DNA of 64,000 nucleotides from Hyaloraphidium curvatum SAG 235-1. Taxonomy: Eukaryota; Fungi; Monoblepharomycota. Where the stretch lies: positions 248,001 through 312,000 of the forward strand of contig JAIVFI010000014.1 in assembly GCA_025558095.1 (NCBI GenBank), in the 5' to 3' direction. The translations under genes and the position numbers were made by a program. The first letter of the stretch is position 1, and each line of letters opens with the position of its first letter. Below the pieces are notes generated by a model. The model was not told where the DNA came from, did no database searches, and was given only the letters and a program-made list of their open reading frames with translations. Below are positions 1 through 8,823 of this stretch, piece after piece.

Positions 1-3000
1 AAGTTCACGGCGGAGCCCTTGACCCCGGCGCGGAGGCAGGAGTACCTCGACGCTACGCGCAATGGACACCTCGCGCAGGCCATGCTGGGCGTGCTGTCGG
101 CGATGGAGGCGGCTGCCGGGCTCGGGGGCAACGAGTTTATGTCGCGCGTCGAGGCGGTTTATCGCACGACTACGATCGGGGGTTTGGAGCCGCGGCACGG
201 GAACCCGGCCGACGCCAATGGCCGCTGGGTCTACGGGGACCTGTCCGAGATCGTGGACCCGCGGCTGCCGACGACCGAGATCTGCGCCAACTGCCCCAAG
301 GGCGACGTGGTACTGGGCTCCCGCCGCTACTTCCTTAACGAGACCAACAGGATCCTCTTTACCGCCCTGGACACCACCGCTTTGGACCGGCTTCGAGGTC
401 TGCTGGCCGAGACGAAGGTAGGCTCTCCTACGCCATGCACGCGCGCATGTCTGATTCGCGCACGGCGGTGTCGCAGGACGAGGCGACAAGGACGGCCATC
501 GGCAATGACATCGCCGTCATCGAGTTCGAGCTGCAGAAGCTGCACGCCCGCGACACGCAGCCCGCCGACTTCGACGATGCGCACTGGCCCAAGGCGATCC
601 GCGCACGCGCTCGCGTGATGGGCAACCTGGTCTTCACGGATGCCAGCAAAGTGTGCCCCCTCCTATTCGTGGGCATCGCGCGCACGCTGCCTCGGATGCG
701 TTTCCTGACAGCCCTTTTCCGCCCAGATCGACGGCGACGGTGATTGTTGCTGTTGCGACAGCATGTCGAAGATGATGGGAGGTGGCGACTGGGACGCCGA
801 CGTTGCGAGGCGCGCTCTGCTCCTTCACCGCCGGATCCAGCTGGAGCACCTCCGGCTGGAATTCGCAGCCTTCCGCCCGACCTTGGTCATCGGCCTGGGG
901 TCGAACATGGCCCGCATGCTGTGCTCCACGAGCGGAAGCCCCCACCTCCCCAAGCGCGCGCTGCCGTTCGCCACCGGCGGCATCCTCAACGTCGAGGTCG
1001 GCGTGGGCGGCTCCGATCTCGCGACCGCCTTCCAGCTCGCGGTCGCCCCGCACCCCGTGGCGTGCGCACTGCTGCCCTCCCATCTGGCCGACTCGGTCAC
1101 CGCCCTCTGCCTCCTCCCGAACCCTGCCAAGGCGGACGCCGGCGCGGTGTTCGACCCGTCGTCGTACTCAGCGGCGGCGGCACTCAACGCGGCATCGCAG
1201 CTCGCAGCGCACACCATCTTTCCGCAGGTCTTTGCGTTCTGGCCCGAGCGGGGCACCGAGGGCGTCACCCACCTCGAGTCGCTCCCCGCGGCTCACCAGC
1301 CGATACCTGAGTCCTTTATTCCGAGCTGGCTCATTTCGACATGCGCAAACATCTTCACCTCGCGGTTCAAGGAGAAGTTCAAGGACCGTTTCCAGGCCTA
1401 CCTCGAGATCTTTGCCGCAAATGGCCTCGGCGACCTCGCTTTCGGCAAGTCCCGTTCGCACCTGGACTCGGCCACCCGCGCGCGGATCGGGCAAGGCGCG
1501 CCCGCACCGCCGGCAGGCCTCCTGGGCGCGCTGGCCTACCGGGCGCGGTGTCTGCTGGTCCCGCGGTCCGGTCAGGCGGCGTCTGCTGCGGTCGCCGAGG
1601 ATGGGGATGAGGTTGCCGTGCTGCTCGAGGACGACGGGCAGGATGCGGTGGCGCTGACGCCGCGAGAGAGCGTGTCCGCCATCTATGGCCTGAAGCCGCA
1701 GGTTGCGGATATCGTCAAGGATCTGGATGGCCTCGGGCGGCATTTCTTGGACCGTTCGTCGGAGAGGACGCGCCCCAGCACCCAGTCCCTCCTGGATGCC
1801 GCGCGCGACCTTCTCTTTGGAGCTGCGGCCGGCGCCGCGCGCCTCCGTCCGATCGCCGACATCCGCCGCGACGTCGGGCTCGGCGAGGTTGCGTTGACGG
1901 ACTTGAAGCTGGACGATAAGCTTGGCTTTGTCCGGAGCGCCGTCGTGGCCGGGGACCTGAACCAGCGGCTCACGCCGAGGCTCCACGCGGGGGATCGCTT
2001 GTCGAGCCTGGACAAAGCCGTATTTGGGAAGTGGCTCACCGCCTACATCGGCTTCCTGCTGCGCCAGGGCGAAGGCGGGAAGGACGAGTTCGGTGCTCCC
2101 GTGTCGTTCGGCCTGGCGGACTCCCTGGACCACTGCAGGATCCCTGGGGCGGCCCGCCGTGGAGTTCTGGCCAAAGTCAAGGAGTGCCTCCGGGACCAGG
2201 ATCCCGGCGTGAATCTCATAGGAGGGGACGTGTCCACCCTCCTCCGCAACTACGCCTTGCCAGGCGCCGCGGCGCTCGGCGCCGGCTCCCCCCGAGATCG
2301 ACTTCATCGTGAATCGAGCAACTACATCGCGTCGAACGGTGTCGCCACCAGGGTGCTCTTTGAGCACCCGCATCATACCAAGGGCTTCAACCGGCTGGGT
2401 GGAGCGCGCAGTGCGGCCAAGGTAATCGCATGCTCGCAGCCAAGTTGACGGTCCGCTGACGGTCGCACCACCTTCCTCGCAGCCGGGTCAGGGTGATCTG
2501 CCTCAAGATGCCAAGTGGGTGACTGGTTGCGTCGGGTGCCCAAGAGGAAGGGGCTGCGATCGCCAGTATCCGAGCTGCAGGTGAGCTTTGCCCCTGTCAA
2601 TTGGTGCCCATTTCCTCCTATCCCTAACTGTCTGCTCACCCGTAGCGCCTGCACCAAAGTGAATCGACAGTGCTTCTACGAGATGCCGGTGTGCGAGTGC
2701 TGCGACAAGGCGCGTCGCGTCTGCGACGGCAGAATGCCCTCGTGCGGGTAGGTTCCCGTCTTGGACACCTCCTCGCACCTCGCGCTGACTGATACGCTTT
2801 CAAACATCAGGCAGTGCACGTATGCAGGGGACACCTGCTCGTGGGACCTTTTGACTGCCCAAGGAAGGCGGAAGGCCGGCGACGCCGAGGACTTTGCCTG
2901 GATCTCCCACGCGCACCACCGCACCATCCCCGAGCTCGCCGGCTGGCATGTTCCCGGCGCCGGCGCCTCGTCGACGCACGCCTTCATGCGTGGCGTGGTG

Positions 3001-4136
3001 CTCGAGGGCGAACTCTGCACCAGCTCGGATCCCGGCCCCCGGAACGGCATCTACTTCCAAAAGATGAAGCAGGGCGACAAGGACGTCGTCTACTACTTCG
3101 ACCACAAGCCAAGCGTCGAGACGGCCACCGACGTCGCGTGCAACATCGTGGCCGCCTCGGTTGACCCGGGTGAGAAGGGCGACACCATTTCGGTCACCGC
3201 CTTTGTCCAAGGGAAGGACGGCAAGCTGGAGGAGCTTACGCTCGACCGCTTGTTCCGGCCGCTGTCGTCGAAGGGTTACAGGGCGAAGGACGAGGCGGCG
3301 CGGCCCGACGAGTGGTGGACGGAGCACCAGGACCTGTCGACGCTGATGGCTGAGGTGTCGAAGTCGCCGTACCCCGTCGACGGCATGCTCGCAGGTGGGC
3401 ATTGACGAAGCTGCTCTGGCTCGTGGTCGCTCACCCGCTCCTATATTCGCCGATCCGCCTCGCAGCGTCTGCGTTCCTCAACCACGCCGGCCCGCTCCTC
3501 GACCACGCGCAGAGCCACCACTCCCAGCTCGCCAAGGAGTACCGCTTCCGCGAGAAGCAGGCCCGCCAGGCGGCCATGAAGAACTGGATCCTCGCGGCCG
3601 GGGAAGCGGTGTGGCGCCAAAAGGTCTACCTGGAGGCCTTCAACGCCCACGTGGAGAAGGAGCGGCCGAAGCTCGGCGAGCCGCCGCCTGACCGCGACCA
3701 CGCGCGCAAGATCGAGGAGGGTGCGCACGCGGCGGGCAGGGACGCGGTGGCGGCGATCGAACGGATCCCCAACCCCATCGTCCTGTGCGGTGCCGGCCAG
3801 GGCTCGGGCTCCCGCATGCCGTACGTCGGCAGCATCGCCGAGTTCCTCTCCCGCCACTTCCTCGTCTTCCTGCTGGGCGAGTACTTCACCTCCCAGCTGT
3901 GCCCGACGTGCCTCGCCAAGCTCGAGCCCAACCCGCTCCAGCGCGGCGACGTCGTGCACAAGCGCTGTGCGACCTGCAAGCGCAACCCCGACCGCGACGG
4001 CTTCGACGGCGAGCTGGTTCTCAACAAGAACCGCTCCGCCACCCTCTGCCTCGTCAGGATCTTTCTTCACATCGTCGCCACTGGCGACCGGCCCGCAGTC
4101 TTCACCCACCGGGCCGCCTCCCGCAACGCCGGATAA
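1..4136 (+). CDS. Large spliced Fanzor/TnpB-like RuvC protein with UDG-like N-terminal region and two Zn(II)2Cys6 clusters (5'-partial, >1246 aa)
   Basis: Exons <1-417, 477-650, 727-2421, 2483-2580, 2646-2747, 2811-3394, 3466-4136. All six GT-AG introns (59-76 nt) keep the frame; total 3741 nt. Motifs: YIASNGVATRVLF (TDG-like, ~2330), RuvC-I SVDPG (D at 3163), bridge-helix-like YRFREKQARQAA, RuvC-II GEYFTSQLCPTC (E at 3879), CATC zinc ribbon, RuvC-III position NKNRSA (4023-4040), C-terminal GDRPAVF. Confidence 0.8.
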
Positions 4137-4305
4137 ACCTACCCGGCACTTATCTGAATGAGTGAGTCTCGCGCCCGTCGATGGGGTATCAGGGTGTTGC
4201 GAGCTTTTGATGGGGGCAGTTAACTGACGGAAAGGCCCCCCTCCCCCGCAATTATCTCTCCAGCATACACGTCGAGCAGTAGTGAGCGCGAGATCGAGAT
4301 AACCG
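4125..4305 (+). ncRNA. Candidate Fanzor omega-RNA scaffold region
   Basis: Immediately 3' of and overlapping the stop codon. Stems: GCCGG..CCGGC across the stop, GGGGGC(4212-4217)/GCCCCC(4235-4240) enclosing palindrome CAGTTAACTG, and TTATCTC/GAGATAA (~4252/~4296). Position matches known Fanzor/TnpB omega-RNAs; expression not shown. Confidence 0.35.
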
Positions 4306-4348
4306 GCACCGGAGCGGACGGGCGAGTGACATCGGAAAACCCGGACAA

Positions 4349-4480
4349 AACATTCCCGACATTTTCGACATTCTAAATGTTCCGAATGTCGCGAATGCTA
4401 AAAGTAACATGTCTACATTCGAATGCATTCAAATGTCGCAACAGGGAAATTTGAATGCCGCGGAATGACCGGGAATGCAG
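4349..4480. repeat. Array of about 14 CATTC/GAATG-type short repeats (left array)
   Basis: cattcccgacattttcgacattctaaatgttccgaatgtcgcgaatgcta...; units in both orientations about every 9-10 bp; AT-richer than the flanks. Confidence 0.8.
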
Positions 4481-5779
4481 CTCTTCCACAGCAGCTTTCC
4501 GGCCACGGATAGGCTCGTATCGAGTACAGCGAGGCAACTGCGTGTATTGTGCATCCTTCTACGCTACATCAGGATCTTCCGACGCCGTCCAGGTGCCGCC
4601 CAGGTGGAGGTGGAAGGTTGAGTTGTCGCAAATTGCCCGGAGCGTGGTGTCGAATTGAAGTCCCGCGCGGTTGCTGGACGGGAGGTGGGAGAAAGTCGAC
4701 ATCGGCGAAGTCTGGCAGGTGCGACAGAGCGGTACTCGCAAGTGCACTTGGGAGGTGGCGTTCGGCTGGGAGGGGAAGAGTGAGCACAGTCCGAAGGAAA
4801 GACAGCAGCGCGACTCACTTGGAGAACCACGCAAGCTGCGAACGAAGTCACGAGAACGCTGGAAAGAAGTACAAGCTCACCTAGAGTAGTAGGCCACGTT
4901 GTCGAACTCCCGGAATCTGGAGCGGAGGAGAGGAGGAAGGTGAGGGTAGCGTGAGCAGGAGTCAACCAAAGCACGCGCGTGAGGCGGACCGGGCTAGCGA
5001 CATTAGCACCGACTGCAGTCCATGTAGAAAAGTGCCGGTATTGCTGGGCTTGACGGCCGAGGGGCAACGGAGTCGTCTGGAGAGAGAACGCCGTGAGCGA
5101 CCCGCCGAAGGAGACCGCCCCGCAACTCGGAAACCCACCGTGCGCGCCGCCCGAAACCGCGGGACGCTGCAGGAGATGTCATGAAAAAGGCGGAGCCGTT
5201 GTCGACTGCGGCGCTCTCGTGGCAGTAAGGTGTCCGCGGTGTCTGAATTCGAAGTGTTTTTGAGAAGCGGAGCTTTCCCGACTTCCTTCTGACACGTGCG
5301 TTGACGATCCGAAGCAAAGACGAGACCAGACTGGAGCTCAAGTGTGCGGAACTGAAGCAATGAATATCATTCAGTCTCACATTTCGCTTCGGCTCGCCTC
5401 CCCGTCGCCCAGACTGAGTGCCCGTAATCGCGCTCCCGCCAACACCTGGTCGCTCAGAACCGCGTCGCTTCGGTGTGCAGAATGCTCATCGACTATGCCT
5501 CGGCTTTGTGCTGTCTCAAACAGGGAGCTTTGTGCAGCAGCGGTTCCAGTCTCCCGCCGAAGTTGCCCGCCGTTCGTTCGGGAGTCAGCCCCCCAATCAG
5601 ACACGATTACAACTTCAGTCCAAGCACGCGGCGCGCGGGACAGGGTCCCATAGTCGTCCCTGAGCTGCAGTTCTTACTGCCTGATTCGGTGGCGCGATTC
5701 GAGGCCCGCAGTTCGGCGCCATCGGTCGACCCCATGAACGAGTTGCCCTGACTTCAGCGCACCGCCTGCGCAACGGGGA

Positions 5780-5920
5780 GCATTCGTCAACATTCAGCGC
5801 CTCCGAATGTTCTATAGAGAGCATTTAAATGTCGAGAATGCTCGGAATGTTTCGTGTACATTCGAAATGCTTCGGGAATGTCGCGAATGATTCCGAATGC
5901 TATCGGGGGGGTTTTCCGGG
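5780..5920. repeat. Array of about 12 CATTC/GAATG-type short repeats (right array)
   Basis: ...gagaatgctcggaatgtttcgtgtacattcgaaatgcttcgggaatgtcgcgaatgattccgaatgcta. Shares GAATGTCGCGAATG with the left array; CGGAAAACCC (4333-4342) is inverted as GGGTTTTCCG (5909-5918). Confidence 0.8.
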
Positions 5921-5969
5921 CCCTGTACCCATAGGCCGAGTGACAAACTTTGAATAATTTCCGGGGGGT

Positions 5970-5990
5970 CCGGGGGGCGGAGCCCCCCGG
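5970..5990. other. Perfect GC hairpin CCGGGGGGC-GGA-GCCCCCCGG
   Basis: 9-bp stem with a C-GNA-G triloop, preceded by a second CCGGGGGG copy at 5961-5968. Confidence 0.85.
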
Positions 5991-7239
5991 GAATCTTCAT
6001 TTTGAGCTATGTTTCGAGCGTTGACGACTTTGATTTATCGCCGCGGTGCGTGGGGGAGGTGCACGGCGCATAGATGTCTCGGGCGGCAGCCGCTGCAATA
6101 GACCGTCACGGGCACCCATTCACCATCCGGCAGAGCCAGAACCGGGTAGAGACGATGCGTGGCGGGCGCAGTTGACCCCACAGCTTGCCTGCGGCGCTCG
6201 GAGCCGAAATCACAATGTGTTTCGCGATCGTTCTTGCGAATGCTGCCCCGAATGTAGGCAGCATACTCGTTTGTTGCCCGATCGTCCGCCCCACGGATTC
6301 AGAGGAAGCTTCGTTGGGTTTACATCCTTTTGTGGAGGCATTGGAGGCCGCTTGGCCGGATCCAGGCAGCATCGAAGTTCCCCGCCAAAATCCTCCACAG
6401 TGGTCCTTCCGAGCCGGTTGGCCATCACACGACCGCGCAGAATCAAGCGTAAGCGAAGCTGTTTACGAAATGCAGCGACAAGGGAAGCGTCGCGCTCGCA
6501 ACCCCACCTGAAGTCGGGCCGATGGGCCCCGTGATGCCGGCATCGACCCATGCTCGCGAGCACTTCGTATGGGAAGTTCCTGGAAGCAAGAAGCAGCGCC
6601 CGACGAGCAAGAGAATGGGGACAAGCGCGCCCGCAATGTCTGGTCGACAGGTGCTCGATCGGCTGACCGCCCACGCTGGTACGACGACGCGAGGTGCCCG
6701 CCCTCGTACAAAACACGACGATGATTGACGATAGCGTTGCCAATCCAACTTTCAAGGCCTTTCCTGGCGAAACCGACGGGTTCGGCGCGCCCGTTCGTCA
6801 ACGGGATCCCTCCTCGTCCAGTCCAGCACGAAGTCTTCTGGAAAGCCGACACGCCGTTCAGCGGCAGCCCATAGACCACCAAAAGCGCTCGTCGCGTTGG
6901 AGCCCCCAATCTCCTCAATTGAGAGCGGTGTGCCGACGTCCCGATGACCCGTCCGACGGGAGGCTCTTCGGCGCGCTCCTGCAGGGTCGAAACACCTCCG
7001 CTCGCCCTGACCGCCGGCCCAGCAACTCTTCCGAGTTCTATGGCGAGCTTAGCGGCCGCCAATCGGGGGCACAGGCCCAATAGCGGCGTGGGGAAGGTGT
7101 GTCGTCGTGACCCGTTTGGCGGTGGGCGCCTATGTCGTCCCGCGAAGCCTATGTCGTCGTGACCCCCTAAGGCCGATCGGCCTATGAGGACTGCAATTCT
7201 GGCTCGCTTGCCCTCTCGTGGCCCGTCAATCTCGCGGCG

Positions 7240-8823
7240 ATGCCCCGCCCCGTGAAGGCGCCTGAGCCCAAAGGTAAGGCGCCGGCTTCCGCGGGTGCCG
7301 GTGTTGCGGACGGGCCCGTTGAGAAGGCGGCACCGCCGAAGCCGGCCGCCAAGAAGAGCAAAGAGAAGGAGAAAGCGGCACCGCCGCCGCCGCCAGTCCC
7401 GTACGAGGAACATTCCCGCATTGTTGCCGAGCATGTCGCAAAGCTGGCGGAAGTTGAAGCGGCTTTGGCGGGACTTCGGGATTCTGTTGAACGGCACGCC
7501 GCGGACTCCGGTTCCCGGGAGCAACAGCTCCGGGAAACCCTTGCAGAACGGGAGGAAGTCATTTGCCACTTGGAAAAGAAGGTGCAGGACCAGGGAGATA
7601 GGATCGCGTGCCTGAAGGACGATATGGTTCGGGTGCACAGTGAAGCCTCGAACACGGTTGAAGCCGAGCGTACGAAGCTGCGGTATGAGGAGCGCCGGAT
7701 CTCGGACCGCGTTGCAAGCATCGAAGCTGAGAAGCAAACGATGCAGAGCAAGCTTGACGAACTCGAGGAGTTCCGGCTCAGAAAGGTGGAACTGGAGGAA
7801 GATCTCGCCCGATTGCAGGCCGAGCTGGCAACCAAAACCAAGGAGCACAAGGAGGCCATTCGAGACCTCGAGGTGAAAAGCTTGAGAGACAAGGTGACTT
7901 TGAGCGTGCGCTGCTCGGACATGTTGTGATTTGATGCGTCCGACTCTGCAGGCTTTCGTGAAGAAGCAGGCCATGGACATGGTCAGCGACGCAATAGCGG
8001 CTTTCAAAGACGTCGCCGAAAAGCAACTCTCGGAGTCGACCAAGCATGCCATGCGCGAGGTCAGTCTTCTCGCACCGTAACGGCCGAGTTCCTGCTAACA
8101 ACGCCCCTTACGCAGAACCAAATGATGGACTCGCAGATCCGGCTCCTGTCTTCAAAGCTCGCCAAAATGGTCCCGGTAAACACTTCACTCAAAGCGAGGA
8201 TTCGTGACCTCAAAACGGAGCTGTCACTCGCCGCGGAGAGGGAAAAGATCCTGCTTGGGCGGCAGAAGAAGCGGGACGAGCTGATAAAGGTCCTCGCCGA
8301 GAAGCTTCGAGAGTGCGATTCGCTGCTGCTGAAGATGCTGGATGAGGTCGAGAAGGCTGCGGCCGAGGGTGCTGCGGCCGGGCTGGCCCGTCGGCGGGAC
8401 TTTACCGGCCGGCGAGGTTCCCTCGGCCTGCCGATCGGGGAGACGATTACGATTGCCGTTCCGCACGGGACCAGCCAGGACGGCAAGGCAGCTGCCTTGC
8501 CCCCGCTGCCCGTCGCCGGGGCTGTTGCCGAGAGCACTGCGTACGGTTCCTCCGTGTCGACCCAGCGCGACGCATTGTCGCGGACGCTGGCGACGGTGTT
8601 GACTTTTGCTTCGGACGAAGCCCCCCTACCTCCGCCTACCTCGGCGTTCGGAATGGGAACCGTAACCGAAGAGCAGGACGAAGAAGACCCCGAACTCTGG
8701 GCGGGAGCGGCGTTCGAGGGGCGAACAAAGCGTGAGATGTCGTTGACAGTCGTTGAGGCACTGGCTGGTCAGTTCAGAGAGAAGCTCGAAAAGCTGACCG
8801 GCGGCGCGCAGAGCGTCGGGTAG
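7240..8823 (+). CDS. CFAP157: Cilia- and flagella-associated protein 157-like coiled-coil protein
   Basis: 3 exons (introns ~7894-7951 and ~8059-8115). LEEFRLRKVELEE...HKEAIRDLEVKSLRDK...AFKDVAEKQLSESTKHAMREN matches the CFAP157 pattern as I recall it. Confidence 0.7.

Follow-up and report, generated by a model that had tools for sequence, protein, structure and literature searches.

Can an RNA-guided nuclease of the Fanzor group take up a zinc-cluster domain of the transcription-factor type, and what would such a domain do there? The question is raised by a gene of Hyaloraphidium curvatum, a monoblepharid chytrid, whose 3' coding part lies on the + strand at positions 1-4136 (stop codon 4134-4136) of a 64,000-nucleotide stretch of strain SAG 235-1 (NCBI GenBank assembly GCA_025558095.1, contig JAIVFI010000014.1, positions 248,001 to 312,000), here called the window, to which all coordinates without a contig label refer. 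The gene starts ~5.6 kb upstream of the window and encodes P0133, a protein of 2987 amino acids (aa), in which a first-pass annotation made from the DNA letters had proposed two tandem Gal4-type Zn2Cys6 clusters inserted into a Fanzor body. The sequence comparisons described below give good support to the identification of a double insertion of this type within a Fanzor1 protein, albeit with a marginal profile score. Fanzor, TnpB and Cas12 proteins use WED and REC domains of their own to read the short motif beside their target, and among the papers searched none had both Fanzor and Zn2Cys6.

The two clusters and their gene model

Both Cys6 motifs were found exactly where the first-pass annotation had placed them, from the first Cys codon of cluster 1 (2528-2530) to the last Cys codon of cluster 2 (2836-2838), and each of them is split by a phase-2 intron (2581-2645 and 2748-2810, respectively) which falls in the codon after Cys4, behind its second base (Table 1). 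Compared with the pattern criterion of the Pfam family Zn_clus (PF00172), C-x2-C-x6-C-x(5-12)-C-x2-C-x(6-8)-C, cluster 2 is canonical and cluster 1 has a shortened first loop, the length of which varies between copies of the gene (x5 in P0133, x4 in the copy at C8:331k, x6 in P0001). The latter, a hypothetical protein of Hyaloraphidium curvatum with 2449 aa, had been found by searching 1.84 billion representative proteins with a profile built from the last exons of three paralogs, and a follow-up search then returned P0133. Every copy read has, in each of its two clusters, an Asp after Cys3 and a Pro two residues ahead of Cys4, and both P0133 clusters carry basic residues between Cys2 and Cys3.

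Scanned alone, the segment spanning P0133 aa 2505-2595 (91 aa) has Zn_clus as its top Pfam family with 23.1 bits (E 8.3e-5), over the gathering cut-off of 21 bits, as is cluster 2 alone with 21.5 bits; the equivalent segment of P0001 scores 27.9 bits, and its clusters alone 21.4 (cluster 1) and 21.1. An exon-by-exon Pfam scan gave no Zn_clus match because single exons hold just part of a cluster. All ten best named clusters of a language-model search were Zn_clus (score 0.82, a lead only), and the best matches of the Zn segment outside the family in its own genome are loci that also match Zn_clus. A six-frame search of the H. curvatum genome yielded more than 110 Zn_clus matches over the cut-off, including at least 12 loci with two matches in one frame, 47-83 aa apart from start to start. 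Double clusters are thus habitual in H. curvatum, and the pair in the Fanzor gene is the tightest of the tandem pairs of the genome (33 aa start to start).

The clusters emerge only on splicing, and the frame read through the Zn region without splicing meets stop codons. Contigs of two public runs were mapped onto window 1-4400 from 90% identity, and those of run X1 show GT..AG joints at 418-476, 669-726, 2422-2482, 2581-2645, 2748-2810 and 3395-3465, so that every predicted intron of the window part of P0133, including those expected by the first-pass annotation, is spliced out in them. Run X1 was labelled RNA by guess; those of its contigs that skip introns must derive from cDNA. One contig extends into intron 2581-2645, at a depth of 3.2 as opposed to 433 for the spliced contigs. 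Joint 2747/2811 was seen in a contig with letters characteristic of the paralog on C5 (92% identical), which attributes the splicing of the Zn exons to the gene in the window (C14) or to its closest paralog. Both Zn introns have GT..AG ends and CTRAC-type branch sites. The search tool marks P0133 as encoded by this window, and its aa 1736-2987 are a contiguous run of the window exon translations, to which the public model is identical.

The Fanzor1 body and the place of the insert

Judging by motifs, profile and fold, the C-terminal ~400 aa of P0133 is Fanzor1-like, in agreement with the host assigned by the first-pass annotation. It shares with the Fanzor1 proteins SpuFz1, GtFz1 and PpFz1 (PDB 8gkh, 9cer, 9cf0) the RuvC-I DPG, a RuvC-II Glu six residues before the first CxxC, the TNB ribbon, an N-[KR]-[DN]-x-S-A helix motif, a C-terminal R-P-x-x-F and the 'TDG' WED strand. 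The helix motif reads N-[KR]-D-x-S-A in a C-terminal alignment of 30 sequences, the clade of P0133 having Asn at the Asp position; D-P-G, RuvC-II Glu, CxxC ribbon and helix motif are described Fanzor signatures (PMC10711439). The RuvC-II Glu is of the rearranged type, and the ribbon, with its x18 spacing, fits the Fanzor1 pattern CxxC-x(12-18)-CxxC; it matches Pfam Cas12f1-like_TNB (PF07282) weakly (E 0.0085, under cut-off). Against PDB chains, the family profile A3 matched PpFz1 (E 2.9e-12), SpuFz1 (3.3e-4) and GtFz1 (4.8e-4), as well as TnpB. A single-sequence search of PDB chains gave no match for P0133, nor did an NCBIfam search of its Fanzor part; among sequence searches the Fanzor structures were thus reached by the family profile alone. 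In an AlphaFold2 model of aa 2440-2987 the RuvC core has a predicted local distance difference test (pLDDT) score above 90, and a Foldseek search with this model was led by Fanzor and Cas12 structures, with PpFz first (E 2.4e-8) and SpuFz in the top five.

At the third catalytic position, Asn takes the place of Asp in every copy of the clade and also in the nearest outside relative, P0002. GtFz1, which has this Asn too (N658), cleaves DNA, and the D606N change raises the activity of SpuFz1 above that of the wild type (PMC11423790). With an active GtFz1 as precedent, Asn in P0133 is no proof of a dead nuclease, and the nuclease-dead interpretation of the Asp-to-Asn change was dropped; by analogy, nuclease activity is presumably retained in P0133.

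The insert (~95 aa) lies between the 'TDG' strand of the WED domain and RuvC-I, a placement that the first-pass annotation had given and that the family alignments bear out. In relatives, the 'TDG' strand is followed by a Y-N-S-R-x-W-type motif and, ~15 residues on, by an L-x-x-L-A-G motif, while in P0133 the matching motifs S-N-G, F-N-R-L-G-G and P-E-L-A-G are kept ~110 residues apart, with both clusters between them. This assignment of residues to family motifs is partly by eye, and the placement rests on a weak motif alignment, as the profile aligned the t-d-G motif to the PpFz1 and SpuFz1 chains with 6.1 and 0.0 bits, respectively. No Cys6 motif was found in the other 131 family hits, or in P0002 and its contig. 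With SpuFz1 positions converted by taking the RuvC-II Glu as E541, its 'TDG' motif falls near residue 331, ahead of the RuvC-I Asp383 and shortly ahead of Tyr345 in the WED loop, the point at which the DNA begins to unwind (PMC10432273). In Fanzor1 complexes the WED-to-RuvC loop contacts the junction of the target-adjacent motif (TAM) duplex and the heteroduplex (PMC11423790), and DNA contact from an insert in or next to this loop is therefore plausible.

Compared with a usual Fanzor1 length of 600-700 aa (PMC11423790), P0133 with its 2987 aa differs by this insert and by ~2400 aa of N-terminal sequence, in which no known domain was found. A conserved domain common to the paralogs was observed within it at aa 583-1100 (C14:238001-248000, about 5900-8200 within it). 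By eye it has FEN1/XPG-like motifs (V-D-A-P, E-A-D-x-H, S-D-R-D-L-L-Y, G-S-H-N-T), and its weak atlas leads are all PIN or FEN-like. For the same region Pfam gave no match, a homolog search was blank, a local hidden Markov model search against the family hits gave no match, and the AlphaFold2 model (pLDDT 47) had no significant Foldseek match.

Paralogs, conservation and selection

The family comprises seven copies, namely C14 (P0133), C5, C8:~89k (P0001), C8:~331k, C31, C17 and a fragment on C15, and full-length paralogs are 47-58% identical in protein. Five other copies (C5, the two on C8, C31 and C17) retain each of the 12 Cys together with the two phase-2 intron positions. The recurrence of the 12 Cys, the Asp, the Pro and the intron positions in such diverged copies places the Cys pattern beyond chance, and by direct reading every paralog has at least one basic Cys2-Cys3 loop.

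The equivalent intron positions fit an origin of the two clusters by tandem duplication of one intron-bearing module, as had been suggested by the first-pass annotation. Three other intron-split Zn_clus genes of the genome (a small sample) have no intron at the equivalent position of the cluster.

Comparison of C14 with C5 revealed 12 nonsynonymous and 2 synonymous differences in the two exons that encode the bulk of the Zn module (the next exon, outside this count, encodes the final two Cys of cluster 2), and 78 nonsynonymous and 138 synonymous differences in the remaining exons (Fisher p 3e-4). These changes in the Zn module fall in loops, and every Cys is retained. Both recent pairs of copies (C14/C5 and C8:331k/C31) are under purifying selection, with a nonsynonymous to synonymous ratio (pN/pS) of ~0.05-0.25.

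Two further observations concern the last exon. In its first ~60 codons (window 3468-3650), conserved residues have identical codons in 73-86% of paralog comparisons, and downstream of position 3650 this share falls to 40-69%; an overlapping element and gene conversion are both possibilities. Matches of 41-55% to this exon also define a second, more distant Fanzor-like family in the same genome, two copies of which have reading frames of ~490 aa ending at an intron.

The duplicated unit and its surroundings

The gene is part of a sharp-ended unit of ~13 kb that has been duplicated repeatedly. C8:319067-332501 and C31:147040-133551 share 13.4 kb (94.85% identical, sharp ends), and window -299 to 4247 of C14 shares 4.5 kb with C5:738836-743640 (92-97% identical), the start of this homology at -299 indicating that the C5 copy is 5'-truncated. 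The two duplications are independent, and both are recent. The homology of both pairs stops on a C-rich run 105-111 nt past the stop codon, and this shared stop point points to the end of a mobile unit. By these comparisons the ~13-kb unit is probably mobile; inspection of two 5' and four 3' junctions revealed neither terminal inverted repeats nor target-site duplications. The C5 copy has in addition an in-frame internal duplication of 255 nt, equivalent to window 3587-3841.

Conservation of the 3' end is limited to a 20-mer over the stop codon (Table 1) and the splice donor, ~25 nt after the stop in all paralogs, of an intron in the 3' untranslated region (3'UTR). A CTGAC branch-point-like site and a C-rich tract of this intron lie inside the unit, and its acceptor AG is 16 nt beyond the unit end. 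A transcript contig from the 3'UTR continues ~660 letters past position 4400.

Arrays rich in GAATG/CATTC at window 4301-4551 and 5751-5951 flank a 1.6-kb segment unique in the genome, from the ends of which pieces of 42-66 nt recur, on C2 and C21 only. The arrays at 4349-4480 and 5780-5920 had been offered by the first-pass annotation as binding targets of the clusters. This proposal has no support: the arrays are located beyond the 3' end of the unit at 4247 and flank the unique segment, and no GAATG arrays were found near the family paralogs; the link of the arrays to the Zn2Cys6 pair was accordingly dropped.

Table 1. Coordinates of the features discussed; positions refer to the window unless a contig is given.
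Feature	Position	Strand	Basis or remark
P0133 exons within the window	...1-417, 477-668, 727-2421, 2483-2580, 2646-2747, 2811-3394, 3466-4136	+	exon translations and transcript joints
WED-type 'TDG' strand (here S-N-G), then F-N-R-L-G-G motif, just ahead of the insert	2350-2421	+	family alignment, partly by eye
Zn2Cys6-type cluster 1	2528-2580 + 2646-2673, aa 2519-2545	+	C-x2-C-x5-C-x6-C-x2-C-x6-C, direct reading
Zn2Cys6-type cluster 2	2692-2747 + 2811-2838, aa 2552-2579	+	canonical C-x2-C-x6-C-x6-C-x2-C-x6-C, direct reading
RuvC-I D-P-G, Asp 2688	3163-3171	+	D and G invariant in 30 aligned family members
RuvC-II Glu six residues ahead of the first CxxC, then TNB zinc ribbon CxxC-x18-CxxC	3879-3977	+	E and four Cys invariant, n=30
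Third RuvC residue, Asn (N-K-N)	4029-4031	+	alignments A3, A4; Asp in 27/30 relatives
Invariant 20-mer over the stop codon, two CCGG 10 nt apart	4128-4147	+	DNA alignment of five copies, genome pattern search
3'UTR intron	4162-4263	+	joint 4161/4264 in transcript contig; donor conserved in all paralogs
Unit 3' end	4247	+	111 nt after stop, C-rich run; C8/C31 pair ends at equivalent place
Tandem Zn_clus loci (examples)	C35:28125-28361, C35:41043-41303, C26:535805-536101, C16:611926-612165		six-frame search
Second Fanzor-like family, copies	C30:190290-190784, C2:953065-953517, C13:280752-281198, C11:497135-497593		last-exon matches

Discussion

Our best reading, which we hold to have an even chance of being right and the functional part of which draws on position and family knowledge only, is that the ~95-aa Zn2Cys6 pair reads double-stranded DNA beside the RNA-guided target of a Fanzor1-family protein. 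Two tandem Gal4-type clusters would have been inserted after the 'TDG' strand, in or next to the WED-to-RuvC loop, of a protein whose RuvC-TNB core has a D-E-N triad of the type of active GtFz1. Each cluster is predicted to bind two zinc ions, and the clusters would contact double-stranded DNA next to the RNA-guided target, with a presumed sequence specificity. In this way a protein-encoded reading, probably of CGG-like triplets, would be added to the choice of TAM or target site.

A side-by-side comparison with classical Gal4-type Zn2Cys6 domains (PF00172) shows agreement in the six-Cys spacing, the Asp after Cys3, the Pro before Cys4 and the basic Cys2-Cys3 residues, as well as substantial differences: the P0133 pair is internal to a nuclease and not N-terminal in a regulator, and its clusters are six residues apart with WED sequence next, in a context where direct reading finds no linker, coiled coil or middle homology region. 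The six-residue inter-cluster linker, which departs from the classical arrangement of a single cluster, a linker and a dimerising coiled coil, is the first of several points that weigh against a DNA-reading pair. The profile match, which the first-pass annotation had made a condition for its claim and which holds for the isolated segment and for cluster 2, fails for cluster 1 alone (16.6 bits, under the cut-off) and for full-length P0133 (11.0 bits, E 0.49); it appears to be real but marginal, with a score driven mostly by the six Cys columns. For full-length P0001, Pfam listed no Zn_clus match up to E 0.1, and no precomputed Pfam domain is on record for P0133 or P0001; the low full-length scores and the empty record are probably why the domain went unannotated. 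In the AlphaFold2 model the insert has a pLDDT of only 50-59 and its position against the WED domain is left undefined, so that the model (pLDDT 25-59 in this region) is of no help for the placement. On the RNA side, an Rfam scan for an omega RNA gave no match, the 3' tails fold no better than shuffles, and the 3' end of the coding sequence has no extra synonymous constraint. Finally, no omega RNA, TAM or target site was identified.

Some of these points count at the same time for another explanation, namely that the clusters are structural zinc modules or guide-RNA binders which lend stability to an enlarged WED domain without reading DNA sequence. In Cas12f, zinc fingers with structural roles are known. 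The marginal Zn_clus score and the acidic Cys2-Cys3 loops of P0001 (cluster 1) and of the copy at C8:331k (cluster 2) are in line with such a role, and WED residues of SpuFz1 near this region bind omega RNA stem 2 (PMC10432273). Nevertheless, residues other than Cys that are hallmarks of DNA-binding Zn2Cys6 domains are kept (the Asp after Cys3, the Pro before Cys4 and at least one basic loop in each paralog), and the C14/C5 excess of nonsynonymous change in the loops would be expected of a specificity surface more than of a scaffold. Since the C8:331k/C31 pair lacks such an excess in its Zn exons (3 nonsynonymous vs 6 synonymous differences), the C14/C5 signal is suggestive only. On balance, we regard a structural or RNA-binding role as possible, at a tentative level.

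A stronger version of the DNA-reading interpretation would make the Zn2Cys6 pair a fast-evolving reader, either of target-adjacent sequence or of a CGG-N10-CCG end of the element itself, in a hybrid targeting scheme that also needs the guide RNA; we consider this version unlikely.

The candidate for such an end is the invariant 20-mer. The genome (31.9 Mb) contains it exactly 7 times (a control pattern had 0 matches), with every family copy, degraded ones included, carrying it once at the 3' end. The 20-mer can be read as CGG-N10-CCG or as the stem of a hairpin, 5 bp long, and its possible roles are those of a Zn2Cys6 site, of an RNA hairpin or of some other signal. Binding of the clusters to this own end of the element, for mobility, guide-RNA production or self-regulation, would agree with the restriction of the 20-mer to family copies, with the invariance of its non-coding half amid diverged surroundings and with its two CGG/CCG half-sites one helical turn apart. 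Set against this, half of the 20-mer codes for A-G-stop, CCGG is common in DNA of 65-70% G+C, an RNA hairpin, splicing or translation signal could account for it equally, and six residues may be too short a linker for a distance of 10 bp. We therefore rate own-end binding as distinctly unlikely.

Still less can be said for P0133 as a domesticated, nuclease-dead Fanzor that regulates transcription in the manner of TldR proteins, with the Zn2Cys6 pair as its DNA-binding domain. TldRs, which are nuclease-dead, RNA-guided repressors derived from TnpB in bacteria, are host genes whose RuvC residues are lost or truncated. What P0133 has in common with them is membership of the TnpB family, an altered catalytic position and a possible DNA-binding role beyond cutting, and the RuvC-III Asn of all copies and of P0002, the transcription-factor type of the domain and the purifying selection on the paralogs could all be accommodated. 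P0133, however, has changed only Asp to Asn, a residue with which GtFz1 cuts DNA and SpuFz1 gains activity (PMC11423790), and its RuvC-I Asp and RuvC-II Glu are intact. Moreover, the gene behaves as part of a mobile unit, and recent sharp-ended duplicates, including a 5'-truncated copy, resemble a mobile element more than a host regulator, so that this explanation appears highly improbable. An artefact, whether an erroneous gene model or Cys residues spaced by chance, is hardly credible, as the nonsignificant full-length Pfam score and the ambiguous origin of the spliced Zn-exon contigs (the C14 gene or its C5 paralog) are outweighed by the spliced contigs themselves, the identical public model and the 12 Cys and two intron positions shared by at least five copies down to 47% identity.

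Overall, these copies extend the range of Fanzor1 architectures to proteins of 2449-2987 aa on ~13-kb units, with a third-position Asn that is a known active variant in the Fanzor1 family. The one described insertion domain of a Fanzor1, the Fanzor RuvC Insertion (FRI) of PpFz1, is of another kind and in another place: it is likewise a lineage-specific insertion of ~100 aa in a Fanzor1 body, but it lies inside RuvC, has no zinc cluster and binds cyclophilin (PMC11423790), whereas the P0133 insert precedes RuvC-I and carries the signature of a DNA-binding domain. If the module is only structural, it would be a curiosity of one chytrid lineage. If the pair does read DNA beside the target, it would represent a new route by which RNA-guided nucleases may change or tighten their target choice via a modular DNA-binding domain, as well as a model from nature for engineering RNA-guided nucleases fused to DNA-binding domains.

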